A stretch of 60,542 nt of DNA from Ruditapes philippinarum (Eukaryota). Below are positions 591 to 52,556 of this stretch, in pieces. The stretch covers positions 124,001 through 184,542 of the forward strand of contig NW_026858762.1 in NCBI RefSeq assembly GCF_026571515.1. Direction: 5' to 3'. How positions within the stretch are numbered: the first letter of the stretch is position 1; every line of letters begins with the position of its first letter. A program made the translations under genes and the position numbers. A model generated the notes under the pieces. That model worked only from the letters and a program-made list of their open reading frames with translations, did not search any database and had not been told where the DNA came from.

Positions 591-1020
591 CGTTTAGCTA
601 GGTTTTCGAATTCGTGAATGTTTGCCGCTAAAGGAATTTAATTTAAACTTAATGTTAGAAAGTTTCTATAGGCTATTTCGAAATGCATTTCTTTTATTAT
701 TCATACTATTTCGCAATCAATCTTCACCTCTTCGTCTATATAATTATGAAGATGCGCAGATCTTCATCTAAATATGAAAGTGCGTGAAGTACAGTAAACT
801 TTGAGAAAAACTCTAAAAAATATAGCCCAGTAGGACACATGAGACATACTCGACAGAGTCCAGTCTATCGGGGACCAATCGGAACGTCCTCGGCTATTAT
901 CTATAATAATATCAAAGGGCCGAAAAGTTGCAATTGATCGGAGACAGTGTACCTGCCTGGAAAAGAAAAAAAAAAAAAACAAAAAAAAAAAAAAACAACA
1001 AAAAAACAAAAAAACAAACA

Positions 1021-2180
1021 AAGTTCAATAATTTAAAAAAAATAAAAATCGCGATACTGAAATAAGACATGGAATGGTCTAAGTATGTACTACCGATTCA
1101 TTTCTGACGGTGTTCATGTTTGTATTATCCTTAGTTTTCTTTAGGATGCTAGGCTGCCAGGCTGCTAGGCTGTTAGGCTGCCAGGCTGCTAACTTCACAA
1201 ATTTCGAAGTGTCAAAAAAAAACAACAACACAGTTCAATATTTAAAAAAATAAAGATCGCGATACTGAAATAAGACGTGGAATGGACTAAATGTGTGCTT
1301 CCGATTCATTTCCGACGGTTTTCATGTTTGTATTATCCTTAGTTTTCATAAGGCTGCTAGGCTGCCAGGCTGCTAACTTCACAAATTTCGAAGTGTCAAA
1401 AAAACAAAACAAAAAAAAACAAACAAAAAAAGTTCAATATTTAAAAAATAAAGATCGCGATACTGAAATAAGACGTGGAATGGTCTAAGTATGTGCTACC
1501 AATTCATTTCCGACGGTTTGCATGTTTGTATTATCCTTAGTTTTCTTTAAGCTGCTAGGCTGCCAGGCTGCTAGGCTGCTAACTTCACAAAATTCGAAGT
1601 GTCAAAAAAAAACAAAAAAAAAAACAAAGTTCAATATTTAAAAAATAAAGATCGCCATACTGAAATAAGACTTTGAATAGTCTAAGTATGTGCTACCAAT
1701 TCATATCCGACGGTTTTCATGTTTGTATTATCCTTAGTTTTCTTTAGGCTGCTAGGCTGCCAGGCTGTTAGGCTGCTAACTTCACAAATTTTGAAGTGTC
1801 AAAAAAAAAAAGAAAAGAAAAACAACAAAAAACAAAGTTCAATATTTAAATTTAACTAATTTAATTATTTAAAAAAAATGAAGTACGCGATACTGAAATT
1901 AGACGAATGGTCTTAGTATTTGCTGCCGATTCATTTCCGACGGTTTTCATGTTTGTACTATCCTGCTAGTCTGCTAACTTCACAAAATTTCGAAGCGTCA
2001 GAATGAAAAGATTATGTTAAGATAAAGTTCAACATCTTAAAAAAATAAAGGTCACGATATTGAAAAAGTCGTTGAATGATCTAAAGAAGTGCTACTAATG
2101 TATATGTTTGTACTATTCTTAGTTTTCTTTAGGCTGCCAGGCTGCTAGGCTGCTAGGCTGCCAACTTCAGGCTGCTAGGC
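1021..2180. repeat. Tandem array of ~6 x ~200-bp units with nested 8-bp repeats
   Basis: The unit aagttcaata...gcgatactgaaataagac...gtattatccttagttttc...(ggctgcta/ggctgcca)n...aacttcacaaatttcgaagtgtc-polyA recurs at ~1021, 1232, 1430, 1627, 1834 and 2025. The last copies are more diverged. Confidence 0.9.
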
Positions 2181-2420
2181 TGCTGGGCTGCCAACTTCAC
2201 GAACATATACATTTTGCATTTTATTATTTATTTTTTTACTTTCTATTTTAGATACCTGTATAGATATTTTCCAAGTTTTTATTCACAAGAATGCTATAGC
2301 ATATATAATAAGTAACAATTCAACAATTCAAACAATGCCTTCAACCTCAGTGGCACTCTCAATCGCACTGCCGCTGGCCTGTTCGTCTCCTGTGCCAAGA
2401 GAGTACATTGTACCTCAATA

Positions 2421-2660
2421 GGTGATTACCACGGAGAAATGAATGGCGAGGTTTTCATTAAGTAGTTTTATCAAATTTAAAGCTAATCCCTAATCTTCCA
2501 GCACACACCGTCGTGGTAATAGACAATGCACCTTAACACTTTTGCAATTACAAGTTTCTAACGTAGTAGAGTACTAAGTGTGATGAGTCCCTCTAACAGC
2601 GCCATAACATACAACTCAACCAAACCAAATGTCACTTGTAGCACAAAAGCTCAATTGAAT
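2421..2660 (+). pseudogene. Relic of an IS630/Tc1-mariner (DDE_3-type) transposase
   Basis: Manual translation gives GDYHGEMNGEVFIK*F, then after a frameshift KLIPNLPAHTVVVIDNAP*H. This matches the DYHxEMN..F..WF...LPNL...VIVMDNAxYH motif, with stops at the expected W and Y positions. Confidence 0.7.
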
Positions 2661-2819
2661 TGTATTAAACATGAGATTTCGTATTTGGCTGAAATGATTG
2701 ATTCTTATTATAACTTTTACTTATAAGATACTATTAGTTTCGTCTTTTCGAGACGGTCTGTTTATCTTGTTATTTATATGCATGACACAATTTGAGAAGT
2801 ACCCTTGTATTGAAAGAAA

Positions 2820-3132
2820 TTTAGTGTCCAGCTTTATTTGTCATCCAATGAAAACACTTCATTTCTTAAATATTATGTGTGTTAATTTTCATAGAAGAAA
2901 AAAAGTCGATACTATATTGAAATCCGTTCATAGTCGCCTTCTATTTTTCATAGTGCTTCATATAGTACCGCGTAGTGACGTAATGAAGGGCCAAATAAAG
3001 CTTGACACTAAATATGTTAGTGTTCATCCTTTGCTGTTCTACAGAAATTAGAAACATTCTCCTGTCGCTATCGCTCCCGTCGAAGTTTCTAATTTCTGTA
3101 GAATAGCACGGATGAACACTAACATATACATA
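2820..3132 (-). mobile_element. Non-autonomous hairpin+IR element (family E), copy 1
   Basis: 21-bp IR pair at 2820-2840/2992-3012, followed by a ~115-bp hairpin (3012-3127). The whole element is the reverse complement of 3564-3874. Confidence 0.8.
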
Positions 3133-3312
3133 GTATTAAAAAAAGGAAATGCTGAGAAGACCAGCGCGCTACCACTACACTACAATGTCTCACTGCAAAT
3201 AGTATGACTAACAAAAAGTACAATACTACCCATACACACATGACTTACCTTTTCTGAAGTGCACTGATCCATGTTATGTTTACAACGGTTCCGAAATAAA
3301 TTAACTTCAACA

Positions 3313-5719: not shown

Positions 5720-7425
5720 ATGACATACTATATATTGTCATTTTTAGTTCTTTGTCTCAGTTTAGAGATGATATTTTATATACAAAAACTGGAGACGTTA
5801 CAGCTCGAGTACCGTTCGTTATCTGCTCATGTACATGGGCATGGTGAGTTTTTATATTATTTACGTCTCAAATTTAAATCAAGTAAATTAAATTCAGTTA
5901 TGGGCATTTTGACAGTTTAAGCCAATATGATATGTTTTTGTATTAAGACCGTCAATTTCTGTTAACCAGGAACGTTTATTATACTTTATAAATCCAGAAT
6001 TTCCTACTTTCGATTTTGATGTGGCTGATTTGCCATGTCGTATTTTCACTCCATGTTACGCAATGCCAAACACGACAATACGACAAAGTGGCACACATCA
6101 GCCACCATAGCATCTTTATTTATCATCTATAACCCTTCTTACCTCAACGCAGCACACCCCTAGATATAAAAAAAATCATGAAACATTCGAAACATGTATT
6201 TACAAATAAAATATTGTGAAGTGAATTGCAAGAGCTCAAATTTTGCAAAATTAACCCTTACTGCGTTAGTCAGGCAGTAGAAATATGGTGATAAATACTG
6301 AAAAATCAGTCATTTATCGCACATACGATCTAGCTTGGATCTTAAATATTTCTACTTTTCTTAAAATCTTACAACTTTTTTTCGCAACTTTGATTTTTTA
6401 AAAAAAATATTTTGGCTCATTTGGAGGCATGTAACTTTAAAGATAAGAAAAAACATATACATTCTATAAAAGGTATTTATCCTATTTTACTTGCTAAAAC
6501 AATTAAGGTACTTTAAACATAACCTGGATTTTAGAGACACCTATAAAAAGTTTTATTCATCTGCCTAAAAGCCCTTTGATATTTTCATTACAGAACCTTG
6601 AGGGCGGGAGTACAGGGCTGCGTTCCATGACAGTTACTCTTCCCTGTTGATCTGTCTTCTATGTGCTCTCATATCTTAAATTACTGATAAAACATTTTTG
6701 ATTTGATTTGTATTTCAATCAAATCTAATGTTCCAGAGTAATTAAGTTTCAACTAAAAATTTACATGCTAATTACTTTACGACTTTTAATTGTTTTATCA
6801 TATTTTTAAATGGCAAGTAGATTGAATATAATTTTTTAATTTAAATGAAAACTCATGAATAAACATGTATCTTTATTTTGTAGGCAGAAAAAGGGAAAAT
6901 TGCCCAGAGCAAACAGAAGCAACATGTGTCCGTGATAATACATCTGGAAACAGTCGACCTATCGTGAACGCATTCTCCGTAAGTGATTCAAGATCTGTGT
7001 CTCCAGCAGAATCTCAAAATAAACTACACAACTATGCTAAAATTCATTTCAACGAAGGAACAGATTTTAACGCGGACACAGGGACATTTTCTTGTAGTAA
7101 ACCCGGAGTGTATTATTTCACTGCCTCTCTGATCAAAAAGCGTGCATATGAGAATTCCGAAAAAGTTGATCTGGTACATTGTATTATTTACAAAAACACA
7201 GAAACTATGCTGGAATTACTTGTCGATCCTAACGACGGCCCTAAAGTTGATGTAAATAATATCTCTGCAGATATTGGAAGTACGGCTGTGACTAACTCGA
7301 TGGTTGTACGACTTGAAAGAGGCGACACAGTTTATCTAGGGGATTGTGACAACCCACTGACATCTCTGGAGCCTTACTCTTCTTTCTCCGGATTTTTGTT
7401 GTACCAAGATGTCGGAAGCATTTAA
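5720..7425 (+). CDS. C1q-domain-containing protein, copy 1 (exons 5720-5843, 6884-7425)
   Basis: Exon 1 encodes MTYYILSFLVLCLSLEMIFYIQKLETLQLEY (hydrophobic N-terminus) and ends in phase 1 at G|gtgagt. Acceptor ttttgtag|GC joins in frame. Exon 2 has gC1q motifs: AFSV, FNEG..FN..TG.F.C..PGVYYF, L..GD.VYL, SSFSGFLLY. Confidence 0.9.
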
Positions 7426-8104
7426 GCGTTAAGATATTCATATTGTCAATGTAAGCCGTAAACAGATATATGTTTGTCATTTAAACTTATAACGACAATA
7501 GTTGTTTTCGAATGTGTTTTTACGACAGTATTGGGGATTGCAGTAAGGGAATCATGCAATTTCATGCTATCTATATTATCATTTTATCTAAGCTCACCGT
7601 TGTTAAAATATTATTAACAGGAGGCACACCTACATGACTATTTAGATAAGACCACAAGTGATCCATTGTCACACCCTAAAGTAATCAACGTGAATAGAAC
7701 ACCAAGGGATGTACTTCTGGTAGTTTGTTCTTAAGGATCATTATATCACAAAATTTAATAAGGAGCTGTATACAGGGTAACTGTTTGTTTTTGTCAGATT
7801 GAGGTCCTCGTTCATCTTATATAAAAAATGAAACCTCATAAACCAGGCTGTAAAAATGCCACCCTAAATATTGGCACATCCACCCGTCTGTCCGTCTCTC
7901 TGTCTGTTTTGCGAAAATGATATTTCATTTTGTTACTTTTTATCATTTTATTTATCTGTTGCCGGTCCTGATTAATGACTCAACTTTATATTATTAGTTT
8001 TTTTATTAATATCTTATGTTTTGTTTTTATAATCCAAAATTATCGCATGACCGCCACAACTTTCCTTTGAAGATCGGCGTTCTCTAAATTCCAGTATTGG
8101 AAAA

Positions 8105-8168
8105 CTTTGGGGTGCTCTAAATGAGGTATCAGTACGCTTTGGGGTGCTCTAAATGAGGTATCAGTACA
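8105..8168. repeat. 32-bp direct tandem duplication
   Basis: ctttggggtgctctaaatgaggtatcagtac occurs twice. Confidence 0.9.
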
Positions 8169-8194
8169 CTTTCTCGCGCATGTCCAGTTTATTA

Positions 8195-8650
8195 TTTTAA
8201 GTTCTCATTCCTTAGAAATAGAAACAGGGAGATATATGAGAACTGATAGAAATAACAGATTGTGTAAATTATGCCCGTATAAAAATGTTGAATCAGAATA
8301 CCACTTCTTATTATGTTGTCCCTTATATTCAGAACTGAGAAAATCTTTTATAAAACATGATCTTTTCCACTCTTAAATAAGTTCTATTCTATTATGTCAT
8401 CAGGAAATAAAAGTAGAATATTGCAACTATGTAAATTTTTAGATAAAGCATTCGCATTAAGATCTAGTGTTTTAGAAAAATGCAAGAATTGTAAATTTGA
8501 TAGTTTCTGCATTTTTATGTGAACATTGTATATTTGTATTGAATGTATTGAATGTATGTCATATTTCAAGTGATTTATGTATGTTTTGTATGTATTGCCA
8601 AAGGCAAAGTTTTGTCGAAAAATGCAATAAAATTTGAATTGAATTGAATT
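8195..8650 (+). mobile_element. 3' fragment of an RTE-X-like LINE nested in the Crypton-like element
   Basis: Translates as LSSHSLEIETGRY...RNNRLCKLC...VESEYHFLLCCPLYSELR (ORF2 C-terminal Cys/His motif). Ends in aataaa and a (tgaat)n tail. Confidence 0.85.
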
Positions 8651-8768
8651 TTATTTCAAATGATAAAGTGAGCATACCTGAAAAAGAGCAAAGCAAAACC
8701 GAAAACATTGAAAGAACTTATTTTTATTTATCAAATTTACAAATCATGTCTATCTTTTTTTTTCTTCT

Positions 8769-10874
8769 TCAAAACTTAAAAATACAGTTATTATAAACAT
8801 GTTGTCCTCCCCGGAACAAATTTCCGGGTTTCAAAGCGGTTGATTGGTTGTTTTTGGATTCGTCATCACTTGCGTGAGTTGCGTCATGTAGAAGCGTTTC
8901 TGTTGATGGTTTATTCAACATTTCGCTTTTGACCTATTCCCTTGCATTCCATTCTGGCGGATTTAATTTATTTGGAAATGTCTACCAAACATTTCAATTT
9001 GTGGGTTTATTTTAACGTCGGACACCGGCCACGGATTTTCGATGGCCTGTTCGTTTTCATGATTTCTTGTTCGGATAAAGACTTGTTTGCGCAAGTCTTT
9101 TTTCCAGAGTGATTAGTGTAAACACCTTTAAGTTCCCGCGAACTGACATATTTCTTTCATAAAACCTTATAGTTTATTCACGCCTACAACTTGATTTTGA
9201 AAAACGCACTTTTCCTGGCTTTCTGGGAAATGAATTTGGTCTCTTATATAAACGCTCCATCTCCAAAGGATTTCAAAAATTGGTCATTATAGTAATCCAC
9301 TATGTTTTGCCGATTGTTGTAGTGTTTTTATAACTTTAGGTTTCAATACGGCCGGTGTTTCAGGCCACCAATATACGTTTTAGAGTTCTTTCCTGTTATA
9401 AACTATAACCTTTTCATTAGAATCTGAAACCTATTTCAAAAACTGATCAGTTTTCCAAAATTTCCTGTGTTCGTCATATCCCCTTAAAACCGAAGAGTTT
9501 TATGTACAGTTATAGAAGAAAACAGTGTGATGATTAAAAGAAAGAGCGTTCTTTATTACCAAATTATTCCCTTTTCCCAAATAACTTTTTCTTCGTCTTC
9601 TAAAATGGGCTGAGCTTTCCCGTCTTTTGCCGACGACGCCTTCTATTCGTTAGAAATTTCATCTGTGCATACAAGAACACTCCTAAACCTTGCATAATCA
9701 GGATTTTTCTCGTCCAAAAAGTTCATACCAGATGTTCCACAATCTCGCAGCTTTCTAAGAAGGCCACATACTAAATGGTAGAGGGAAAGTAATCGCCATT
9801 CTGCTTCCTGACCTCGACGACAAATCTGAAACAATGATCAATTTTTTAATTTTTAGCTTTAAACAATGTTTAACAGGAGATACTGACCGAAGAGCCAGTT
9901 AGTGAATCACAATCGGAACGTCCTTGACTATTATCTATAATAACTTCGGAAATAATACGGATTGAAAGTAGTTCTACCACGTGGTTTTTGATGTAAACAG
10001 AAACAGTGTGTGTTATGTAAAACGAATGTATATTTTGACATCCAAAGGAAAATAATGTTTCGGTACAATTATGTTTGAAAATATATCTAACAACACTTTT
10101 TAATTAAACAATTAATTAAACAATCCCCACTGATGTACAATTTTAATCAAATTCGACTTGATGTCATTTAGTACTTTTGGTTTCTACAACCCTATTAATA
10201 AAATATATATAATAATGTATTGTTTTGCTTTTGTATCTATGAATTCACTTATATTAGGTGGACTTTTACTTGATATAATCGAAATAAAACTTTTCAACTA
10301 CTCCCAACATAAAATTTACGAATATATCTCTGAAATATAAAGTAGAGAATTTTCTAGATTTATATTTGAAATCGAGGTAGAAATTAATATTTAACACTGA
10401 GAATAGATTCATGAACTTACCTCGACAAATGGATATTAATGTCCAATTCCTCCAACACTGGTATTCCAGGCTTCGTTTTTCTCCACGCCTCAAATGTATT
10501 GTAAGCCCATTGCGTGTTACGGTCCGTGTTCTTTGACCTTGAACCAGCGCATCAAGGTCAGAGTCGGACACGCTTTCTCCAAAACGTTCTCTTTTTTCAT
10601 TATTGAAGGGTTTCTCTTCCTGCTTAAAATCCTGGTCAAAGTCAATCAATTGGAAGTTGCCGAAATAGTTCGGTTGTACATCATTTTCAAAAGTGTCTAT
10701 TTGACTACTTGTCAGTAGGCCTATGTCATTAAAAACACCACTACGCTCAATTTCACTTAATGTCTGTGAAAGTAACAAATCATCCTGTGTAACGTTTTCA
10801 CTATTAAACGTAGTGCTCATTTCAAACAAGTCCAAAGCCTGCGATAAAACAAAATCATTATTATCTAACTCCAT
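8769..10874 (-). pseudogene. DUF3504/Crypton-type tyrosine recombinase, two exons (10874-10421, 9825-8769), many frameshifts
   Basis: Across frames: RFGESVSDSDL, NTDRNTQWAYNTFEAWR, intron gtaag...tttcag, FVVEVRKQNGDY, SLYHLVCGLLRKLR, AQPILEDEEKVIWEKG, TVFFYN..LFG.RGYDEH (catalytic R), TNHSGKKTCA (HxxK/R), EIM..TGH (H), C-terminal VYNNCIFKF*. Confidence 0.85.
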
Positions 10875-11122
10875 ACTTGTCCCACGACGGGCAAACTGAA
10901 AATGACAAGAATTTGGCGCTAAATAAGGTAAACTGCTAGGGCTTAGCGAATTTGATTGTTCATTTTTCTAGGGGTTCACTATATCTCTGCCAGCGAAGGA
11001 GCAGAGGCACCGAATGGGTGTATTTCTATGTGTATCTCTAAAATTATCATTTGTTTAAATCATGCGATAATACGAAATATCGAAAATCTCCAAAAGAAGT
11101 TGTGGCGGTCATGCGATAAAAC

Positions 11123-11300
11123 AGTTACAGAATATTAACTCGGACTTCACCGGCTGGTATCAGCGCATGGGGCGACAAAAAGGGTCAATCATGGAAATTA
11201 ATCTCGACGTTCCGTCTCGATTAATTTCCTATGATTGACCCTTGTTGTCGCCCCATGCGCTGATACCAGCCGGTAAAGTCCTCGTTAATATTCTATAACT
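11123..11300 (-). other. Long imperfect palindrome with strand-specific tandem G.A pairs and a GAA triloop
   Basis: Top strand: aatattaa-CTCG-gactt...aaattaat-CTCG-acg-ttc-cgt-CTCG-attaattt...aagtc-CTCG-ttaatatt. On the bottom strand this gives two CGAG/CGAG pairs and an acg-GAA-cgt apex. Confidence 0.9.
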
Positions 11301-12234
11301 ATTACGTAAAAGTCATGTCCGAGATCATAATAAGAGTCATCAGGCACTGTACTCGAGGAATTGACTTCTTTTATTTTGTTTATGTTTCTATAACCAGTAA
11401 CAGGTTTTGTCTCCCGGCTTTCTGTCATCATTTTGATCACGAGTGCAATTCATCGAAATGAGCTTCCTTCGGAAGGATCATAATAGGGTGTGACAATCAA
11501 TCATGCTATAGTTGATACTCTAGCGGCCTATTTGGAAATTTACGAACTTTTATAAGCCTGTTGGATAAATATGTTTCGATAAGATGACAAAACTCATCTT
11601 CTGGAAAGAACATTTACTGATATTCTAACAAAATTTACAAATCGTTATGTAAGAGAAATCGAATAAATAGAAAATTACTCTAAATTTGGCCGATACTTAG
11701 ATACTTGCATAAATGTTGGTTAATTATAAATTATTACATATATAACCTCGTCAGATTTTATTCTTTTATGAAGGAAGACAATATTTTTTGTAGTATCTAG
11801 TAATATACAATGTAGGAAATAACAATTATGTCTTGTCTATAACGATTGTTTCTATAAGTCTATGTTTTACTTTTGATTAATCAACGGGTATTGTTACGAT
11901 GGCCGTCTGTACTTGTTGTTGTTGTTGTTGCTTTAATAAAATTGTTTACAATCAAAATGAAGTTTTATCAATAGTGAAATACTGTACTCACATATATTCA
12001 TATTGAGATTACATGACGAAAGTTAAACCAAAGTAAACCGTAAAACATGATCAAAGTTCAGTCTTTTTACAGTACTTTTCCGACAACTGTCAAAAATATA
12101 TTAATTACCGTGAGGTTTTAAAAGAAGAACTTACTTAATTCGGATTTTTTTTATGAATGACGTATTTTCTAACAGACACCTTTTAAGCGTTTATTTGCAA
12201 TATAAAATTGAATAAAACATAAAACAACAACTAA

Positions 12235-13194
12235 AGTTTGACTATTCGAAGTACATGGATAGCTGATCCACTCGCCCCGGATTCGGCGTCCGCGTCCAGA
12301 TTTCAGATTAAAGTTTTGGTGCAGTAAAATATTTTTTACTATAAGTTTTTCAATTCTTAAGGCATCAACTTCAAACTTCAAATATATGTTCCTTATCATC
12401 AACCACATCCTATGTGACAATTTTCATAACTCTAGCACCAATATTGTCAGATTTATCTCCCCTTGAATTTAGAATTTTCCTTAAAAATAATGTTTTTACT
12501 GTTACTTCTTTATTTCTTAAGGGATCAACTTCATACTTCAAATGTATGTTCCTTATCATCAACAACATCTTATGTGACAAGTGTCATAACTCTTGCACCA
12601 ATATATTCAGATTTATCTCCCCTTGAACTTTAAATTTTCCGTAGAAATGTTATTTTTACTGTTACTTCTTTATTTCTTGAGGGATCAACTTCACACTTCA
12701 AATATATGTTCCTTATCATTTACTACATCTTATGTAACAAGATTCATAACTCTAGCACCAAAATTTACTTAAAAAATATTTTTTTTACTAACTTTAGTTT
12801 TAAAGGTATCTACCTCAAACTTCATACACATATTCCTTATCAGCAAACACATCTTATGTGACAAGGTTCATAACTCTTGAAGCAATATTTTCACATTTAT
12901 CTCCCTTTGAACTTAATATTGTCTTTAAGAAAAAATATAACTTCTTTACCTTTTTAAGGTATCTACTTCAAACTTCAAATATATATTTCTTATCATTACA
13001 CACATGTTGTGTGACAAGGTTCATAACTCTAGATTATTTCCAGAATGATTCCCCCTTGAACTTGGTATAAATTTTAACAACTATAATTCTTGTCATAAGA
13101 AGAAATATATTTATATCATAATTGGTTTTGTCTTCCTTATTGCGTCAAGTATTTAATTAGTCGAGCTTCGCTGTCTTCTGTGACAGCTCTTGTT
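12235..13194 (+). mobile_element. Helentron-associated (HINE/DINE-1-like) non-autonomous element with internal ~155-bp tandem repeats, copy 1
   Basis: (gcgtcc)n microsatellite near the 5' end, ~5 internal repeats, 3' subTIR tagtcgagct, short hairpin gctgtc..gacagc, terminal tcttgtt. Confidence 0.75.
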
Positions 13195-13559
13195 ATTAGA
13201 ATATTTTTTAATATAATCAATCACTTATTTTTAATGCCATAAACTTAGACAAATTGTCAAATTAAAAAAAAAAACAGTTAACTTGTGTCCCTAAATATAA
13301 AATACGATTTTGGATTCATGCACTATTAATCATTTCTTACTAATATGAACATAAATGTCAGATTTTCATCATTTTACTTATTCACTGTGATTGATAAATA
13401 TTTTAAAGAATCTTTTTCAACATTTGCGATTGATTAATTTGCTGAAAAAAGGTTAAAAAATTTAAAACAATTCAGAAGATTAAAATTTGAAAATTGTTAT
13501 GTGATACAAAATTAGTTTTTGAAATAGGCTGTTAAATTTTGTGGCATGGGTGGCATTCA

Positions 13560-14909: not shown

Positions 14910-17900
14910 ATGACAAATTATATATTGTCATTTCTAGTTCTCTGTCTCAGTTTAGAGATGATATTTTATATACAAAAACTGGAGACGTTACAGCTAGAGT
15001 ACCGCTCGCTATCTGCTGATGTACATGGTGAGTTTTTCAAATTTAAATCAAGTAAATTAAATTCAGTTATGGGCATTTAGACAATTAAAGCTGGCCAATA
15101 TGATATGTAAGACCGTCAATTTCTGTTAACCATGAACGTTTATTATACTTTATACATCCTGAATTTCCTACTTTCGATTTTGATTTCTGCATTTTATGGT
15201 TGCTGATATGTGCCATGTCGTATTTTCACACGATAATACAACAAAGTGGCACACATCAGCCACCATAGCATCTTTAGTTATCATCTATAACCATTCTTAC
15301 AACAACGCAGCACACCTCTAGGTATAAGAAATCATGAAAAATTCGAAACATGTATATATAGATGATATTGAAGAGTGTAGATTTAATACTAAATTTATCG
15401 AACGAGTTGAATAAAATCATATTATGCGAGCCTCTGGCGAGCATAATATTGTTTTAATAAATTTAGTATTGAAACAACACAAATATAATATTTTATTTAT
15501 CACATAATTATATAAAATAAGAACGGTAAACTGTTAACAAGAGTCATTTTTATTTGATGCACCTATAGTGTAAAGGTAACAAGTCAAAATAGTTTATTGG
15601 CATAAACGTTTTACACGTTCATCGCCAAGTTATATAAATGGCGGTTAATAATTTCACATAAAACATTGCATATACAAATACAAATTTTGTAATAAATACA
15701 TGTACAAAACATACATAATATTTAAGTACAGAAAAGCATGGTGATGAATTTAACATAGCTATATAATTACAGGCAAATAACAGTGAAACACAAAAAACAA
15801 CATTGATTTTCAGATTAATATTGTTTGTAAATAAAGAAAAAAATATTAACAGAAAACTAGACAGTATTTCTTTTTTCAAATGATAAGTGAATATATTTAG
15901 CTAATTTTATCATAACGTTTTTAGAAGAAGCAGTCATTATACTTTTAAATTTGTTTATATTTGGCCAAGTATAATAGTATCTTGGTAGATAAAGTGCTCT
16001 TAAATCAGAATAATATGGACATATCAATAACAGATGATACTCATTTTCAACCACTTTCATATTACATTTCACACATAATCTATTGTTTCTATCTATATTT
16101 CTGAAGCGACCTTCCTCTATAGCTAATCTATGAGCCGAACATCTAAATTTTGAAAGGGATTTTCTATGTTTATCATTTGTTATAAAACTAAGATATTTTT
16201 CATAACCAAAATCAGTTTTTAATTTCTTTATAAACTTCTCATTTTCTAGATACACGCAGTTCAGCATACCAATTTTGCATATTTTGATCTTTAATACGTT
16301 GGATAATACTATTTAATTGAGAATTATTTAATACTAAGTTTGGATCCCACAAATATTGTAAACCAAGCGAATTTAACAAACGTTTTACATTTAATGTCCA
16401 GGCATTGACTAAATTATCATTCTGGTCTTTTAACTTCATAATTTTATACATAAGTGTACCTGGGATTTTCCTAATTCTAGACCAAAATTTTATTATTCTG
16501 ATATTACGAATGACTGATAATGGAAATTTACCCGATTCTCCATAAACGGTAACATTAGCGCGCTTTAACGCTATGTTTATAGCGCAAATGACGTCACGTC
16601 AAAGTGTTATTACACTAGTGTAATATCGTCTAGTGTAATATCGTTTTTATTAAAAGGCTTACACTCCTGCGCCACGGTTTATGTGATAATTAAAAATAGT
16701 GTATTGTTAAGTGAACGAAGAAAGTTATTTACACATTGCAAGAGCTCAAATTATTGCAAAATTAGCCCTTACTGCGTTAATCAGGCAGTATAAATACGGT
16801 GATAAATACTGAAAAATCACTCATTTATTGCAAATAAGATCTAGATGTAAACAATCTTGAATATTTCTACTTTTCTTAAAATCTTACAACTTTTTTCTCA
16901 ACTTTGATTTTTAAAAAAAATATTTTGGCTCATTTGGAGGCATTCAACTTTTAAGATAAGAAAAACATATACATTCTCAAACTCCTCACAGTGATTACCT
17001 CCCTTGGCAGAATTGTAATCACTGCCTTCAAAGACGTCACATGATGATGAAAGTCACATGACGTTACGTCGAAATTCAAATGTAAATATCGACCGTTACA
17101 AAGAAAATCTAACGTCATTTTTCTCTTTCTGTTTTATTTTTAACTTTTTGTACCTACGTCCGTTATATTTTAACAAAAAATTATCAAAAGTACACAAAAT
17201 AATGAAAAATAAATTAAAAAGCTAAAAAATATAAATATCCAAATTTGGATATTTCAATGTTTGTGATGGAAGAGATCTCTGTACTGATAAGGGGAGATCA
17301 CTGCGTAGGAGATTGATACATTCTATAAAAGGTATTTATCCTATTTTACTTGCTCAAACAATTTAGGTACTTTAAACATAACATGGCTTTTAGAGACACC
17401 TATAAAAAGTTTTATTCATCTGCCTAAAAGCCCTTTGATATTGTCAGGTACAGAAGCTTGAGGGCAGGAGTACAGGGCTGCGTTCCATGAAAGTTACTCT
17501 CCCCTGTTGATATGTTTTCTTTGGATATGTTTTCTATGTGTTCTCATATCTTTAATTACTGATAATAACCTTTTGATTTGTATTTCAATCAAATTTAATG
17601 TTACAGAGTAATTAAGTTTCAACTAAAATTATAGATTTTAGATTTTATTTCCAAATACATGTGGGTTATACCCATGAGTACACAGCATATATACAAACAT
17701 ACATACATACAGAGACATACTATCAAAGTCATTAAATTTATATAGCATATATTTAACATTTACTGTATATTTGAGACATAAGTTTGGTTTAATATGAACG
17801 GAATTATCATATTACAGCAAGGTTTAAATGAAGCACAAGTTTTGCATAATGATACCGATTACATTACATTTACCTTCCTAGCTAATATAATTTACGAATA

Positions 17901-18707
17901 GTCAACATTTGTTCTTGATTCAAACATTTTAAGATAAACATGATAATTTTCTTATAATATTTTTAATTTGAGATGTTAACAATTCAATAAATTTTGGTAT
18001 ATTTGTTTTTTTTTTCCAAATATACATGTTGATTACTTTACGACTTTTAATTGTTGGTTGTTTTATCATATGTTTTAAGTTGGCAAGTAGATTGGATATC
18101 ATTTTTCAATTTAAATGAAAACTCATGAATAAACATGTATTATTATTTTGCAGGCCGGAAAGAGAGTTGTTCAAGGGAAAATTGCCAAGAGCCAACGGAA
18201 ACAACATGTATCAATGATAAAACATCTGGTAACAGTCGACCTATCGTTAATGCATTCTCTGTAAGTGACCCAAGGTCTGTGTCTCCAGCAGAATCTCTAA
18301 ATAAACTACAGAACTATTCTAAAGTTCATTTCAACGAAGGAACGGATTTTAACGCGGACACAGGGATATTTTCTTGTAGTAAACCAGGGGTGTATTATTT
18401 CAGTGCCTCTCTTATCAAAAAGCGTGCGTATGAGAATTCCGAAAAAGTTGATCTGTTACATTGTATTATTTACAAAAACACTGGAACCATGCTGGAATTA
18501 CGTGTTGATCCTACCGACGGCCCTAAAGTTGACGTTGATAATATCTCTGCAGATATTGGAAGTACGGCTGTGACTAACTCGATGGTTATAAGACTTGGAA
18601 AAGGCGACACAGTTTATCTAGGGGATTCTGACAACCCACTGACATCTCTTGAGTCTTGGTCTTCTTTCTCCGGATTCTTGTTATACCCAGATGTCGGAAG
18701 CATTTAA
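14910..18707 (+). CDS. C1q-domain-containing protein, copy 2 (exons 14910-15027, 18154-18707)
   Basis: MTNYILSFLVLCLSLEM...SADVH G|gtgagt, acceptor ttttgcag|GC in frame. Intact gC1q exon. Confidence 0.9.
15360..16690 (+). mobile_element. Non-autonomous hairpin+IR element (family C), interrupted by a LINE fragment
   Basis: Hairpin 15375-15480 with atattatg-CGAG-cc-tct-gg-CGAG-cataatat. 11-bp IR ttatcacataa (15497-15507/16679-16689). Absent from the intron of C1q copy 1. Confidence 0.75.
15582..16547 (-). mobile_element. 3' fragment of an RTE-X-like LINE with 7-bp TSD
   Basis: ORFs 16239-16451 and 15857-16267 (FRCSAHRLAIEEGRF...LCVKC...ENEYHLLLICPYY). ggtaaca is duplicated at 15575-15581 and 16548-16554. 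Empty site at ~27038. Confidence 0.88.
16978..17315. mobile_element. MITE with imperfect TIRs and 9-bp TSD (Mutator-like by TSD length)
   Basis: atacattct is duplicated at 16969-16977 and 17316-17324. Ends caaactcctcacagtgat / atcactgcgtaggagattg. Empty in units 1 and 3. Confidence 0.8.
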
Positions 18708-19382
18708 AGGTTAATATATTCAAATTGTCAGTGCATGCAGTAAACAGATATATGTTTGTCATTTAAACTTACAACGACAATAGTCAGCGATTTCGAATGT
18801 GTATTTACGACAGTATTGGGGTTTGCAGTAAGGGAATCATGCGGTTTCTTGCTATCATCTTGCTATGATTATTATCATTTTATATAAGCTTACCGCTCTT
18901 TGAATATAAGGCACATATTTGTTACTACGTGACCACAAATGATCAATTGTCACACCCTTAAGTGATCAACGTGAATAGAGCATCTAGCGATGCACCTTTG
19001 GTAGTTTGTGCTGGAGGATCACTATACATATATTACGCTTTTCATCTACTTCATCCGGGGTAACTGTTTCTTTTTGTCTTATAGATGCCCTCGGTTATCT
19101 TATATAAAGTGAATAGGAAATATCTTGCATAAACAGACACTCCCCAAAAACCCTGACTGTCCTCTGGGGAAAGATCCAATGGTTTATGAGCTACATTGCG
19201 ATTACTTAAAAAAAAGAAATTTCATAAACCAGCATGTAAAATGGCCACCCTGAATATTGGCTCTGTGTCTCTTTTTGCGAAAATGATATTGCATTTTGTT
19301 GCTTTTAATCATTTTTTTTGCCTGTTGTCGGTCCTGATTCATGAGTCAAATACATAGTATTAGTTTTTTATTATTAATATTT

Positions 19383-20381
19383 TAAAATAGATAAATACAG
19401 AATCCCTAAAGAAAGCCCAACACGGCAAAATTGAAAATGTTGCAGGCTCGGTTTGATTGAGCGTGTTCATGGACGGTACTGGAAGGTGCAAGTTACCGTC
19501 CACGCCCCCTAGCACCGGCTTAAGCAGAATTCAACATTTAAACGTGAAATAGTAAAATTTTGAATTTAGAAACATCCGCAGATGTGTTCATACGGCGGTT
19601 ATCATGGAACCTTCAATGTGACACTTCCGTGCCATTCCATGAAAAGCGGCGTATGGTCCCCAAGTGATAAAAAGCGTGTGCCCTAAACGAGAAAACAATG
19701 GGCAGAACTAAATAAAATGGAATTTTGATAGGGGATCAGAGGTTATGAAGCCTGCGTATCACAGATAAGACGTCAAAAGACAAATTTAAAAAGCAGGCAA
19801 CATATCCTTAGGGTGATTCAACATTATTCAAGTAGGAATATTGGAACCACCCAACTAGAAAATGCCGAAAAGGTGAAAATAAAAATACCACAAGCACAAC
19901 AATAATGTCGTGCTGAACGATCTTCAAGGATCGAAAATATAACATCATTGATTAAATGTACGGGGAGACTTTTTACAGCCGCCACACGGCACAAATAACA
20001 CGGATGTGATCATAAAATAGATAAATACAGAATCCCTAAAGAAAGCCCAACACGGCAAAATTGAAAATGTTGCAGGCTCGGTTTGATTGAGCCTGTTCAT
20101 GGACGGTACTTGAAGGTGCAAGTTACCGTCCACGCCCCCTAGCACCGGCTTAAGCAGAATTCAACATTTAAACGTGAAATAGTAAAATTTTGAATTTAGA
20201 AACATCCGCAGATGTGTTCATACGGCGGTTTTCATGGAACCTTCAATGTGACACTTCCGTGCCATTCCATGAAAAGCGGCGTATGGTCCCCAAGTGATAA
20301 AAAGCGTGTGCCCTAAACGAGAAGACAATGGGCAGAACTAAATAAAATGGAATTTTGATAGGGGATCAGAGGTTATTAAGC
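19383..20381. mobile_element. Dispersed repeat inserted as ~1.6 head-to-tail copies of a 630-bp unit
   Basis: 19383-~19750 is repeated at 20013-~20381. Absent from units 1 and 3. Related pieces at ~27945-28025, ~42280-42450, ~43180-43560 (inverted) and ~53200-53275. Confidence 0.8.
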
Positions 20382-21354
20382 TTTGGTTTTATAATCGAAA
20401 AGTAAAAGTCATGTCTGAGATTATAATAAGAGCCATCACGCACTGTACCCGAGGAAATTGACTTCTTTTATTTTGTTTCTATAACCAGTAACAGGTTTAG
20501 TCTCCGGGCTTTATGTCAACATTTTGATCACGAGTGCAATTCATCGAAATGAGTTTCCCTTTGGTATTTTATTCGGAACGATCATTATAGGGTGTGACAA
20601 TCAATCATGCTTTAGTTGATACTCGAGCGGCCTATTTGGATATTTACGAACTTTTATCAGCCTGTTGTATAAATATGTTTTGATGAGATGACAAAACTCA
20701 TCTTCTGGAAAGAATATTTACTGATATTCTAACAAAAGTTACAAAATGTTATGGAAGGGTATTCGAATAAATAGAAATTTTCTCTAAATTTGGCCGATGC
20801 TTAGATACTTGCATAAATGTTGGTTAATTATAAATTATAACATATATAACCTCGTCAGGTTTTATTGTTGTATGAAGGAAGACAATATTTTTTTGGAGTA
20901 TCTAGTAATATACAATGTAGGAAATAACAATTATGTCTTGTCTATAACGATTGTTTCTATAAGTCTATGTTTTACTTTTGATTAATCAACTGGTATTGTC
21001 ACGATGGTTTGTACTTGTTGTTGTTGTTGCTTTCAAAGATTTGTTTAATAAAATTGTTTACAATCAAAATGAAGTTTTATCAATAGTGAAATACTGTACT
21101 CACATATATTCATATTGAGTTTACATGACGAAAGTTAAAACAAAGTAAACCGTAAAACATGATCAAAGTTCAGTCTTTTTACAGTACTTTTCCGACAACT
21201 GTCAAAAATATATTAATTTCCGTGAGGTTTTAAAAGAAGAACTTACTTAATTCGGATTTTTTTTTATGAATGACGTATTTTATAACAGACACCTTTTAAG
21301 CGTTTATTTGCAATATAAAATTGAATAAAACATAAAACAACAACTAAAGATGCA

Positions 21355-22443
21355 TTTTAAGATTGACTATTCGAAGTACATGGATAGCTGATCCACTCGC
21401 CGCGGCGTCGGTGTCCGCGTCAAGATTTCAGATTAAAGTTTTGGTGCAGTAAAATATTTTTCACTATAACTTTTTCAATTCTTAAGGCATCGACTTCAAA
21501 CTTCAAATATATGTTCCTTATCATCAACCACATCCTATGTGAGAATTTTCATAACTCTTACACCAATATTTTCAGATTTATCTCCCCTTGAACTTAGAAT
21601 TTTCCTTAATTTTTTTTTTACTGTTACTTCTTTATTTCTTAAGGGATCAACTTCATACTTCAGGTATATGTTCCTTATCATCAACCATATCCTATGTGTA
21701 AATGTTCATAACTCTAGCACCAATATTGTCAGATTTATCTCCCCTTGAACTAAAAATCATGTTTTTACTGTTACTTCTTTATTTCTTAAGGGATCAACCA
21801 TATACTTCAAATGTATGTTCCTTATCATCAACAACATCTTATGTGACACGGTTCATAACTCTAGCACCAATATATTCAGATTTATCTCCCCTTGAACTTT
21901 AAATTTTCTGTAGAAATGTTATTTTTACTGTTACTTCTTTATTTCTTGAGGGATCAACTTCACACTTTAAGTATATGTTCCTTATCATTTACTACATCTT
22001 ATGTAACAAGATTCATAACTTTAGCACAAATATTCACTTAAAAAATGTTTTTTTACTAACTTTAGTTTTAAAGGTATCTACCTCAAACTTCAAACACATA
22101 TTCCTTATCATCAGACAAGGTTCATAACTCTTGAAGCAATATTTTCACATTTATCTCCCTTTGAACTTAGTATTGTCTTTAAGAAAAATTATAACTTCTT
22201 TACCTTTTTAAGGTATCTACTTTAAACTTCAAATATATATTTCTTATCATTACACACAAGCTGCAGTGTGGCAAGGTTCATAACTCTAGTATGACTTTTT
22301 CCAGAATGACTTGGCATAAAGTTTAACAACTATTATTCTTGTCATATGAAGAAATATATTTATATCCTAATTGGTTTTTTCTTCCTTATTGCGTCAAGTA
22401 TTTAATAAGTCGAGCTTCGCTGTCTTCTGTGACAGCTCTTGTT
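21355..22443 (+). mobile_element. HINE/Helentron-like element, copy 2 (~6 internal repeats)
   Basis: Paralogue of 12235-13194 with the same 3' end. Confidence 0.75.
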
Positions 22444-22804
22444 ATTAGAATATTTTTTAATATAATCAATCACTTATTTTTAATGCCATAAACTTAGACA
22501 AATTGTCAAATAAAAAAATCCAGTTAACTTGTGTCCCTAAATATAAAATACGATTTTGGATTCAGTCACTATTAATCATTTCTTACTAATATGAGCATAA
22601 ATGTCAGATTTTCATTATTTTACTTATTCACTGTGATTGATAAATATTTTAAAGAATCTTTTTCAACATTTGCGATTGATTAATTTGCTGAAAAAGGTTC
22701 AAAAATTTAAAACAATTCAGAAGATTAAAATTTGAAAATTGTTATGTGATACAAAATTAGTTTTTGAAATAGGCTGTTAAATTTTGCGGCATGGCTGGCA
22801 TTCA

Positions 22805-27200: not shown

Positions 27201-29108
27201 TGAACGAAGAAAGTTATTTACACATTGCAAGAGCTCAAATTATGCAAAATTAGCCCTTACTGCGTTAATCAGGCAGTATAAATATGGTTATAAATACTGA
27301 AAAATCAGTCATTTATTGCAAATAAGATCTAGATGTAAACAATTACTTGAATCTTGAATATTTCTACTTTTCTTATAATCTTACAACTTTTTTCTCAACT
27401 TTGATTTAAAAAAATAATATTTTGGCTCATTTGGAGGCATTCAACTTTTAAGATACGAAAAACATATACATTCTATAAAAGGTATTTATCCTATTTTACT
27501 TGCTCAAACAATTTAGGTACTTTAAATATAACATGGCTTTTAGAGACAGCTATAAAAAGTTTTATTCATCTGCCTAAAAGCCCTTTGATATTGTCAGGTA
27601 CAGAAGCTTGAGGGCAGGAGTACAGGGCTGCGTTCCATGAAAGTTACTCTCCCCTGTTGATATATTTTCTTTGGATATGTTTTCTATGTGTTCTCATATC
27701 TTTAATTACTGATAATAACCTTTTGATTTGTATTTCAATCAAATTTAATGTTACAGAGTAATTAAGTTTCAACTAAAATGATAGATTTTATTTCCAAATA
27801 CATGTGGGTTATAGTGTTACACTAGACGATATTACACTAGCCGTAAAAAGTTGCCCCGTACTTCGCTTCAGTGTTGTTATATTTTCTGGTCCTTCGGGAT
27901 CATTGATGCCAACACTATAAAGTGTTGAGAATTGAGTACCGCTCAAGCCGGTGCTAGGGGGTGTGAGTGATGTTGCACTTATTCATTATCACTCATGTAC
28001 AGACTCAATCAAACCGAGTCTGCAATTCTTATGTTATTTTGTTGTGATTAATGCTTCCGAGGGATCACTTTGTTTCCAGAATTTTATACCCATGAGTACA
28101 CAGCATATATACAAACATACATACAAACAGAAACATAATATCAAAGTCATTAAACATATAAAGCATATATTTAACATTTACTGTATATTTGAGACATAAG
28201 TTTGGTTTAATATGAACGGAATTATCATATTACATGAAGCACAGGTTTTGCATAATGATATAACTTACATTACAGTTACCTTCCTAGCTACTATAATTTA
28301 CAAATATTCAACATTTGTTCTTGATTCAAACATTTTAAAGATAAATATTAATAATTTTCTTATAATATTTTCATTTTGAGATGTTAACAATTCAATAAAT
28401 TTTGGTATATTTGGTTCTATCCATATATACATGTTCATTACTTTACGACTTTTAATTGTTGGTTGTTTTATCATATTTTTTAAGTTGGCAAGTAGATTGG
28501 TTATAATTTTTCAATTTAAATGAAAACTCATGAATAAACATGTATATTTTGCAGACCTGAAAGAGAGTTGTTCAAGGGAAAATTGCCAAGGGCCAACGGA
28601 AACAACATGTGTCAATGATAAAACATCTAGTAACAGTCGACCTATCGTTAATGCATTCTCTGTCAGTGACCCAAGATCTGTGTCTCCAGCAGAATCTCTA
28701 AATAAACTACAGAACTATTCTAAAGTTCATTTCAACGAAGGAACGGATTTTAACGCGGAAACAGGGATATTTTCTTGTACTAAACCAGGGGTGTATTATT
28801 TCACTGCCTCTCTCATCAAAAAGCGTGCATATGATAATACCGAAAAAGTTGATCTGGTACATTGTATTATTTACAAAAACACAGTAACCATGCTGGAATT
28901 ACGTGTTGATCCTACCGACGGCCCTAAAGTTGACGTTGATAATATCTCTGCAGATATTGGAAGTACGGCTGTGACTAACTCGATGGTTGTAAGACTTCAA
29001 AAAGGCGACACAGTCTATCTAGGGGATTGTGACAACCCACTAACATCTCTGGAGTCTTGGTCTTCTTTCTCAGGATTCTTGTTATACCCAGATGTCGGAA
29101 GCATTTAA
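24286..29108 (+). CDS. C1q-domain-containing protein, copy 3 (exons 24286-24406, 28555-29108)
   Basis: MTNYILSFLVLCLSLEM...YRYLLSADVH G|gtgagt, acceptor ttttgcag|AC gives DLKESC in frame. Intact gC1q exon. Confidence 0.9.
24656..26738. mobile_element. 2.08-kb non-autonomous TIR transposon with TA TSD (animal EnSpm/CACTA-like)
   Basis: TIR cccagcaggcaca / tgtgcctgctggg with TA on both sides. Empty site catctttagttatc in unit 2. Many subterminal palindromic tcaacgttga motifs. Superfamily assignment is inference. Confidence 0.85.
26825..27180 (+). mobile_element. Family C hairpin+IR element, uninterrupted copy
   Basis: Hairpin ~26840-26946 with a CGAG-cc-tct-gg-CGAG apex. IR ttatcacata 26963-26972 / tatgtgataa 27169-27178. 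Confidence 0.75.
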
Positions 29109-30761
29109 CCGTTAAGATATGCATATTGTCAGTTTACGCCGTTTACAGATATGTGTTTATCATTTAAACTTATAACGACAATAGTCAGCGATTTCGAATG
29201 TGTTTTTGCGACAGTATTGGGGTTTGCAGTAAGGGAATCATGCGTTTTTTTTGCTATCATCTTGCTATATTATCATTTTATATAAGCTTACCGCTCCTTG
29301 AATATTATTAACAGAAGGCACATATGTGTTACTACATGATCACAGATGATTAATTGTCACACCCTTAAGTAATCAACGTGAATAGAGCATCTAGCGATGC
29401 ACCTTTGGGAGTTTAGGCTATATTACGTTTTTCTTCTACTGCATCTGGGGTAACTGTTTCTTTTTGTCTTATAGATGCCCTCGGTTATCTTATATAAAGT
29501 GAATAGGAAATATCTTGCATAAACAGACACTCCCCAAAAACCCTGACTGTCCTCTGGGGGAAGATCCAATGGTTTATGAGCTACATTGCGATTACTTAAA
29601 AAAAGAAATCTCATCATCAGCATGTAAAATGGCCACCCTGAAAATTGGCACATTTGTACGTCCGACCGTCTCTGTGTCTGTTTTTGCGAAAATGATATTG
29701 CATTTTGTTGCTTTTAATCATAGTCTGTTGTCGGTCCTGATTCATGAGTAAAATACGTAGTATTAGTTTTTTTATTATAAATATTATATGCTTTGTTTTT
29801 ATAATCGAAAAGTAAAAGTCATGTCTGAGATCATAATAAGAGCCATCACGCACCGTACCGTACCGACTTACAGGTTTTGTCTCCCGGCTTTCTGGCATCA
29901 TTTTGATCATGAGTGCAATTAATCGAAATGAGCTTCCCTTTGGTGTTTTATTCGGAAATATCATTATAGGGTGTGACAATCAATCATGCTTTAGTTGATA
30001 CTCGTGCGACCTATTTTCGAACTTTTATCAGCCTGTTGGATAAATACTTTTTGATGAGATGACACAACTCATCTTCTGGAAATAATATTTACTGATACTC
30101 TAACAAAATTTATAAATCGTTATGGAAGGGTACTCGAATAAATAGAAAATTACTGTAAATTTGGCCGATACTTAGATACTTGAATAAATATTGGTTAATT
30201 TCCGGTGCAATATTATAAATTATTACATATAACGTCGTCAGATTTTATTTTAATATTTCTCAATGTTGTGTTAAGGAAGACAATAATTGTTTTGTAGTAT
30301 CTAGTAATATACAATGTATGAAATAACTATTATGTCTTGCCCATAACGATCATTGTTTCTATAAGTCTATGTTTTACTTTTGAGTAATCAATGGGTTTTG
30401 TCGCGATGGTTTTTACTTGTTGTTGTTGTTATTGCTTTCAAAGATACATTTAATAAAATTGTTTACAATCAAAAAGAACTTTTATCAATAGTGAAATACT
30501 GTTCTCACATATATATTAATATTGAGTTAAAATGACAAAAGTTAAACCAAAGTAAACCGTAGAACATGATTAAAGTTCAATCTTTTTACAATACTTTTCA
30601 GACAATTGTCAAAAATATATTAATAAAGAAATTACCGTGAGGTTTTACAAGAATAACTTACTTTAGATTTTCTTTGTGAATGAAGTTTCTTATAACAGAC
30701 ACATTTAAAGCGTTTTTTGCCATATAAAATTGAATAAAACATAACAAAACAACAGATGCAT

Positions 30762-31612
30762 TTTAAGCTCGACTATACGAAGTATATGGATAGCTGACCT
30801 ACTCGCCCCGGTGTCGGCTTCGGCGTCTGCGTCCGCGTCCAGATTTCAGATTAAAGTTTTGGTGCAGTAAAATATTTTTCACTATAACTTTTTCATTTCT
30901 TAAGGTATCAACTTCAAACTTCTAATATATGTTGCTTATCATCAACCACATCCTATGTGACAATGTCCATAACTCTAGCACCAATATATTCAGATTTATC
31001 TCCCCTTGAACTTTAAATTTTCTTAAGAAATTAAATTTTTACTGTTACTTCTTTATTTCTTGAGGGATCAACTTCACACTTCAAATATATGTTCCTTATC
31101 ATTTACTACATCTTAAGTAAAAATATCTATAACTCTAGCACCATTATTGCAAGAATTATCAACCCATGATTTTGTTTACTTATTTTTTACTAACTTTAGT
31201 TTTAAAGGTCTCTACCTCAAACTTCAAACACATATTCCTTATCGTCAAACACATCTTATGTGACAAGAATCATAACTCTTGAAGAAATATTTTCACATTT
31301 ATCTCCCTTTAAACTTAAAATTGTTTTTAAGACAAATTATAACTTCTTTACTTTTTAAGGTATCTACTTCAAACTTCAAATATATAATCTTATCATTACA
31401 CGCATGCTGTATGACAAGGTTCATAACTCTAGTGTGACTATTTCCAGAATTATTCCCCCTTGAACTTGGTATAAATTTTAACAACTATAATTTTTGTCAT
31501 AAGAAGAAATATATTTATATCATAATTGATTTTTCTTTCATAGTTTTGTCTTCCTTACTGCGTCAAGTATTTAATTAGTCGAGCTTCGCTGTCTTCTGTG
31601 ACAGCTCTTGTT
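30762..31612 (+). mobile_element. HINE/Helentron-like element, copy 3 (~4 internal repeats, intact subTIRs)
   Basis: agctcgacta (30766-30775) / tagtcgagct (31576-31585), (gcgtcc)n tract, 3' hairpin gctgtc-ttctgt-gacagc. Confidence 0.8.
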
Positions 31613-52479: not shown

Positions 52480-52556
52480 CGTCACCTTAGTTCAGTAACG
52501 GGTTAACTCCTATTTAATTATGTAAGGAGTTAACCTGTTACTGCACTAAGGTGACG
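52480..52556. repeat. Near-perfect 32-bp-arm palindrome
   Basis: cgtcaccttagttcagtaacgggttaactcct / aggagttaacctgttactgcactaaggtgacg, two mismatches. Confidence 0.85.

Follow-up and report, generated by a model that had tools for sequence, protein, structure and literature searches.

How Cryptons move has, to our knowledge, never been shown for animals, and their ends have been described as undefinable. In integrons, an integrated cassette carries one half of the outer repeat at its 5' end, and the other half together with the inner palindrome at its 3' end. Circularisation of the cassette rebuilds the imperfect palindrome (attC), and strands are exchanged on one side of the foot of the palindrome. 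In animal Cryptons neither direct nor inverted terminal repeats were found (PMC3212892), and a 2026 study of fungal DUF3504 elements (Glomhopper) describes such repeats as variable or poorly conserved (PMC13465315). In the literature, Repbase entries lying outside our search, we found no description of Crypton ends with a hairpin, a stem-loop or an integron-like layout. Here we describe such ends in a 60,542-nucleotide (nt) stretch of the Manila clam, Ruditapes philippinarum (assembly GCF_026571515.1, contig NW_026858762.1, positions 124,001 to 184,542), which we call the window and which is overall AT-rich eukaryotic DNA. We found that positions 8040-11305 are an old, inactivated copy of a Crypton-type DNA transposon, named family A below. 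We consider it probable that the whole is best explained as a dead Crypton with precise hairpin ends, whose tyrosine recombinase (YR) would make a circle that rebuilds an attC-like site.

Exact boundaries of the insertion

Two paralogous empty sites in the window define the whole inserted element as 8040-11305, an insert of exactly 3,266 bp; coordinates are those of the window and of its plus strand unless stated, and the gene of the element is antisense. The occupied site reads ...ataatccaaaa^TTATCGC...CTATTAC^gtaaaagtc and both empty sites read ataatcgaaaa^gtaaaagtc, where ^ marks a junction. Empty site 1 (20391-20412) has its junction between 20401 and 20402, and empty site 2 (29801-29822) between 29811 and 29812. 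The flanks of the insert are ~83-84% identical to the two empty units across more than 1 kb. In the window copy, the element ends and the opposite flanks have zero bases in common, so there is no target-site duplication (TSD) and no ambiguity in the boundary.

A sequence-only reading of the window had proposed an insertion in the first unit only, with two empty controls and no clean TSD, and the comparison of filled and empty sites confirmed all of this. Its right end, 11301, was 4 nt short of the position given by the empty sites, 11305. The empty sites that it had placed at ~20391 and ~29801 do exist, and their junctions lie ~10 nt away from those positions. The three paralogous units (6500-13300, 17359-22546 and 27509-31715) have a spacing of ~9.4 kb and are 78-90% identical; the Crypton copy is present in the first of them only. 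Periodic repeats of ~160 bp occur inside the units, around 12330-13075.

Asymmetric ends and a terminal hairpin

The element carries two inverted repeats (IRs) at unequal distances from its ends. The 5' IR (8040-8062) sits at the very tip, and its core is formed by its first 13 nt, TTATCGCATGACC. The 3' subterminal IR (11097-11119), complementary to the 5' IR at 23 of 23 positions, is set 186 nt inward of the 3' end of the element. These were the only two matches to the IR pattern in the window, against 0 expected by chance. Directly adjoining the 3' IR is a terminal hairpin (11120-11305), whose foot begins with AACAG and whose 3' end is CTATTAC with the final AC unpaired. The hairpin spans 184 nt and is made of two 78-nt arms (11120-11197 and 11226-11303) that are 90% complementary. 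Folded as DNA, it reached a dG of -86 kcal/mol (z = -22 versus shuffles). It starts 246 nt upstream of a minus-strand ATG at 10874. The asymmetric layout, with one IR terminal and the other ~180 bp internal because the hairpin lies outside it, and a hairpin ~250 bp ahead of the ATG had both been read from the letters before, and both agree with these measurements.

An additional internal copy of the IR core, CATGCGATAA, lies at 11060-11073, 49 nt inward of the 3' IR, and other family-A copies have it too. The 5' region holds two 32-nt tandem repeats (8094-8157; 84% identity). Two more long hairpins occur in the window, one at 53295-53440 with arms of 47 nt and one at 52476-52560 with arms of 36 nt; neither is obviously connected with family A.

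Family A across the clam genome

Copies were searched for over the 1.4-Gb assembly. The 23-nt IR had ~119 matches at no more than one mismatch, and at least 40 genomic copies hold the IR and the hairpin as a single unit, all ending at the same base. The start TTATCGCATGACC and the end ...TATAACTATTAC are the same in at least 30 copies with unrelated flanks. Because the end base beyond the hairpin is identical in all copies, the hairpin is mobilised together with the IR-bounded part. This search of the ends had been set beforehand as the test of whether the hairpin is independent, and a separate insertion of the hairpin is ruled out by it.

About 100 copies were found in total. Approximately ten are near full length (2.7-2.8 kb, 90-95% identical, with unrelated flanks), and most of the others are 1-1.3-kb internal-deletion derivatives that retain both ends. 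In the short derivatives the complementarity of the IRs persists in the first 13 nt only, which suggests a functional core of 13 nt. The 2.8-kb family sequence contains two YR exons and the copies have no other long open reading frame (ORF) in common. No reverse transcriptase, long terminal repeats (LTRs) or split direct repeats, the marks of DIRS and Ngaro elements, were found in this 2.8-kb sequence.

Furthermore, in two independent copies, L006 and L007, the segment between the IRs runs in the opposite orientation, the termini are unchanged and the crossover falls within the 13-nt core; the derivatives are located at L006:1501-2493 and, on the reverse strand, in L007. Site-specific inversion between inverted YR sites would produce such a footprint. 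A 13-nt core is short for homologous recombination.

Several other arrangements were seen among the copies. At L020/L021 (contig C10208:67363-70560), family-A derivatives stand in tandem with a period of 1,095-1,098 bp and ~145 bp of identical flank, and at L026 two copies lie head to tail with only TTAT between them. A related short family (L045:204-420, L045:3344-3667 and L057:371) starts with TTATCGCATG[G/A]CTGTGAGC and ends with ...TATAACTATTAC. The sequence GCGATAA-TTCAGTA-TTATCGC at L045:3351-3371 looks like two inverted half-sites with a 7-bp spacer.

A tyrosine recombinase gene, broken in the window copy

The sole gene of the element has two large exons on the minus strand. The remnant of exon 1 (10420-10874, minus strand, with the ATG at 10874) codes for an acidic N-terminus with a KNT...W...W motif and is interrupted by one frameshift, which tblastn placed between 10551 and 10509. 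The remnant of the large exon (8772-9869, minus strand) covers the core-binding and catalytic (DUF3504/YR) domains. Its coding pieces are spread over all three frames, and a single read-through alignment over 8772-9869 contains 22 stops (tblastn, with the open exon of copy L034 as query). The frameshift in exon 1 and the stops in the large exon show that the window copy is dead.

The window copy also contains a nested segment foreign to family A (8200-8647, plus strand), where the alignment to other copies breaks. Other full-length family-A copies align to element positions 1-160 and 609-3266 only, and dozens of dispersed repeats, 92-98% identical, align to positions 158-611 only. As read from the sequence, this 448-bp tail has a short ORF end with a CX2C...HX4C pattern followed by (GAATT)n. 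It looks like the tail of a 5'-truncated non-LTR retrotransposon, that is, a long interspersed nuclear element (LINE), or a derivative like a short interspersed nuclear element (SINE). Without this fragment, full-length family A is ~2.8 kb. The sequence-only reading had taken the window copy as the candidate autonomous type. It is not autonomous, because its gene is broken, and the copy also carries the nested LINE fragment; the family does have copies with open exons. In copy L034 (contig C5123) both exons are open, and contig C12014 has a copy annotated as a protein of 481 residues. A 358-bp insert (L034:3698-4056), an extremely abundant repeat, separates the exons of the otherwise open L034 copy, and contigs are ~1,000 times deeper there than elsewhere in the element.

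Next, the protein was searched exon by exon, the single full-length sequence used being the database protein P0001. The open exon of L034 matched the Pfam families DUF3504 (3.6e-16) and Phage_integrase (1.8e-8), both above the curated cut-offs, and it also had a weak match to the QRICH1 domain. A profile of 12 homologues matched the solved structures of QRICH1 (9hjt), an integrase (3nkh) and XerA (5hxy), and in this comparison the H, H and Y aligned with those of 3nkh and 5hxy. The AlphaFold model (pLDDT 72) matched QRICH1, Cre, Brujita Int, XerA, lambda Int, VchIntIA, Tn1549 Int and Flp with a probability of 1.00. The catalytic residues R128, H246, H272 and Y281 are present. On the basis of sequence matches and a predicted fold, the sole gene of family A is one for a DUF3504/phage-integrase YR with a Cre-like predicted fold. 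The Crypton-type recombinase proposed earlier for this locus is thus supported by Pfam, profile and predicted-fold matches, including those to Cre, XerA, lambda Int, IntI and Flp. The matches to DUF3504 and to the QRICH1 domain are compatible with the CryptonA clade.

The same end layout in other families

A search of the clam genome with the open exon returned many YR paralogues at 36-54% identity. Two further multi-copy families, B and C, have YRs 51-53% identical to the family A protein and IR sequences of their own; both were read from loci with 1.5-kb flanks, and the 3' flank of family B past the terminal C is one base only. Family B (loci L047, L049, L050, L051 and L070) has the 5' end TTAACCTATAGCTC and a hairpin of ~186 nt, and family C (loci L056, L061 and L065) has the 5' end TTGTATCATAGC and a hairpin of ~105 nt. 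In both, the inverted partner adjoins a hairpin that starts with AACAG and ends with CTATTAC, the gene is antisense, and the hairpin lies upstream of the gene start. In family B a second IR copy lies ~89 nt inward of the 3' IR, analogous to the extra core of family A, and comparison of L047 with L070 revealed a paired compensatory change across the two IRs.

The layout was also found outside the clam genome. Among metagenome contigs, 39 loci were found that code for relatives with 29-53% identity. Where there was sufficient upstream sequence, about ten of about 14 environmental loci had a large palindrome ahead of the gene, and in eight of the nine environmental relatives tested the bases adjoining the palindrome recur, inverted, downstream of the gene (these eight have 33-41% protein identity). 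The environmental 3' ends are CTATTAC, CTATCAC, CTCTTAC, CTTCTAC or TTATAAC, followed by AT, TT or GT. Many of the environmental IRs have a ...CATG core in common, and, as in the clam families, a TTCG-like loop stands at the hairpin apex. Some of the contigs are just 1.4-3.5 kb long and contain a hairpin, an IR, a YR gene, an IR and nothing else.

The layout and open YR frames with H...Y motifs occur together in at least 11 YR families, the most distant at 33% identity. The families differ in their IR and stem sequences but have the same, or a closely related, hairpin foot and 3' end: the foot begins with an ACAG-like motif and the last bases are ...AC (CTATTAC in the three clam families). Comparison of these loci shows that the end architecture, a 5' terminal IR, a 3' subterminal IR and a long predicted hairpin, is conserved together with the YR gene down to 33% identity. 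At L064:2947-3225, a 280-nt palindrome (94%) lies downstream, not upstream, of a YR paralogue that is more distant (36% identity) and may represent another type of layout.

Joined ends and target preference

To model the junction that a circle would contain, we concatenated the last 170-240 nt and the first 50 nt of the element in families A, B and C and folded them as DNA. In all three families the joined ends fold into one continuous hairpin, in which the 5' IR pairs with the 3' IR and extends the stem, and the terminal AC are the sole unpaired bases at the joint, as a 2-nt bulge. At the foot, conserved C.A mismatches on the top strand of the element are G.T pairs on the gene-sense strand, and for this reason the gene-sense strand folds better, by 3-4.6 kcal/mol in 11 of 11 family-A copies tested. 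It folds better by a similar margin in family C and about equally in family B. Of nine environmental hairpins, four clearly favoured the gene-sense strand, four folded about equally well on both strands and one favoured the other strand. As a hint of single-strand use, this modelled bias is suggestive and no more.

The flanks of the copies revealed a loose target. In 34 3' flanks, the first base was A or T in 30 (15 each), the second was T in 30 and the third was A or G in 32; the 5' flanks (n = 30) had no base preference. The resulting 3' consensus, W-T-R-W, resembles the elements' own first four bases, TT[A/G][T/A]. These flanks show that family A, as recorded by its resident copies, inserts directly upstream of W-T-R-W. 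The element-side sequence is invariant at both junctions. This is unlike the random resolution of a mismatched overlap, and exchange of a single defined strand would fit it.

Proposed mechanism and alternatives

We propose that the YR would excise the element as a circle. Joining of the 3' end to the 5' end would rebuild a palindrome of ~230 nt, in which the paired IRs lengthen the hairpin stem, and the strand exchange point would sit at the unpaired AC, at the foot of the stem. The rebuilt site would then recombine with a loosely defined target, N^WTRW. An integron cassette and its attC site have this same topology, so recombination may act on a single strand folded upon itself or on an extruded cruciform. 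The sequence-only reading had suggested that circularisation would give a composite att-like site; the folding of the joined ends as one hairpin in three clam families supports the composite site, and circularisation itself stays a conditional step here. A wider proposal, which we advance tentatively and as possible rather than probable, is that animals hold a widespread Crypton clade that recombines via a folded hairpin site rebuilt on circularisation, possibly with one strand exchanged and the product resolved by replication. Such a folded site would account for the loose target, for the lack of a shared core and for the invariant element side at both junctions.

Several observations weigh against this proposal. 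The window insertion has no base in common with its target, whereas classical YR recombination proceeds through a core that both partners possess. The strand bias is modest (gene-sense strand clearly better in six families, about equal in five and opposite in one), and because DNA palindromes can maintain themselves, paired changes in the stem are weak proof of selection. No 3'-to-5' circle joint was found among the listed joints in assembled contigs (Logan). The spliced joint was not seen in assembled RNA-library contigs (Logan), and the contigs from RNA libraries cover the exons thinly and could be DNA carry-over. In the recombinase, family A and 11 mollusc homologues all have a lysine (HSGK[R/K]T) where the second catalytic arginine would align, which leaves the R-H-R-Y tetrad incomplete in family A. 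More distant relatives that have the same end layout keep HSLRAT, and family A, with the lysine form of its YR, has been amplified in the genome.

The strongest alternative is the same Crypton with an ordinary duplex mechanism, in which the YR recombines the IR cores and the hairpin is not a recombination substrate; it might instead be a promoter, a regulatory element, a replication or packaging signal, or a region that binds accessory factors. The position of the hairpin ~250 nt upstream of the ATG would suit such roles, the 13-nt cores have the usual size of a YR binding arm (PMC3212892), and the additional core copies in the 3' region resemble accessory sites. Inversion of the body between the IRs is likewise consistent with duplex site-specific inversion, and the strand bias in folding is small. 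However, the element ends not at the 3' IR but on the far side of the hairpin, at the conserved ...AC. The two exchange points thus flank the hairpin, which necessarily moves along. In addition, families with different stems have kept the foot of the hairpin, its apex loop and the AC bulge at the joint. We therefore regard the duplex mechanism as unlikely, and a site that includes the hairpin remains our preferred explanation.

In a second alternative, a Crypton-derived gene would have been captured by a non-autonomous Helentron/Helitron2 (HLE2) element, which moves by the rolling-circle mechanism with a Rep/helicase acting in trans. Short terminal IRs, a stem-loop after the right repeat and the lack of a TSD have been described for HLE2 (PMC11417382, PMC4067079), and head-to-tail copies do occur in family A (L026). 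At least 94 Helitron-like Rep matches were found in the clam genome, and many of them have long open frames. Against this, no contig was common to the 94 listed Rep matches (PF14214) and the family-A IRs among the matches listed, which leave out 19 IR matches. The T^T rule of HLE2 does not hold for family A either: the verified empty site is A^G, and the base at -1 is T in only 8 of 30 copies. The hairpin of ~100-190 nt far exceeds the 5-10-bp palindromes and short stem-loops of HLE2 (PMC4067079), and the layout is kept with open YR frames in at least 11 families and on short environmental contigs whose only gene is the YR. The target rule, the lack of a Rep partner among the matches listed and the conservation of the ends together with the YR gene led us to reject the Helentron reading, which we judge very improbable. 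Several of the Rep matches (for example C4213:20759-21298 and C14714:220690-221229) lie within open frames of 2,000-2,640 residues; the clam thus also holds apparently intact Helitron/Helentron elements. Finally, the view that there is no mobile element, but a host KIAA1958/ZMYM-like gene between chance repeats or a segmental duplication, can draw on the public annotation of homologues as KIAA1958-like, QRICH1-like or ZMYM2-like, but it is refuted by the exact insertion against two empty sites and by a family of dozens of same-ended copies in unrelated flanks with internal-deletion derivatives, and we give it practically no weight.

Significance

Family A supplies parts that can be tested: exact ends with an empty-site control, a conserved junction structure and a target rule, together with open recombinase genes and ready 1-kb mini-elements. 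A recombinase-site pair of this type can be taken to the bench and could yield a new tool for site-specific recombination. The vertebrate DUF3504 genes (ZMYM2-4, QRICH1, KIAA1958 and KCTD1) can now be placed beside an ancestor with a known DNA site. If the folded-strand reading is true, a mechanism known only from bacterial integrons and phages would extend to animal genomes, as a eukaryotic counterpart of integron attC or CTX-phi recombination.

Comparison with known systems

HLE2 elements, including their HINE/DINE-1 derivatives, resemble family A in having a short IR at the 5' tip, an inner 3' IR followed by a stem-loop, no TSD and many deletion derivatives. Family A differs in that no Rep/helicase was found in or near its copies among the matches listed, its target is not T^T, its hairpin is roughly ten times longer, and its hairpin layout goes with a YR gene across distant families. 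The attP(+) site of CTX-phi, recombined by XerCD, is similar in that inverted stretches of a single strand pair there to make the YR site; it differs in being bacterial and in relying on host recombinases.

The integron attC site is matched in topology by the joined ends of families A, B and C, as judged from predicted structure only. A loose target, a YR enzyme and unpaired bases at the foot (in family A the AC and the conserved C.A/G.T positions) are further likenesses. There is no sequence homology, however, and the palindrome of family A is much longer. Moreover, family A encodes its own recombinase, whereas cassettes depend on the IntI of their platform. The comparison with integrons is offered as an analogy of mechanism, not of descent.

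Like the CryptonA elements, family A has a single DUF3504-type YR gene and no reverse transcriptase, shows no true target duplication but just loose microhomology with the target, and has more non-autonomous deletion derivatives than coding copies (PMC3212892, PMC13465315). It differs from them in a lysine in place of the second catalytic arginine, and in sharply defined ends with a 5' terminal IR, a 3' subterminal IR and a terminal hairpin of 100-190 nt with a conserved foot and apex. Family A works like these elements, and its most fitting place is probably among the Cryptons with a DUF3504 (CryptonA) recombinase.

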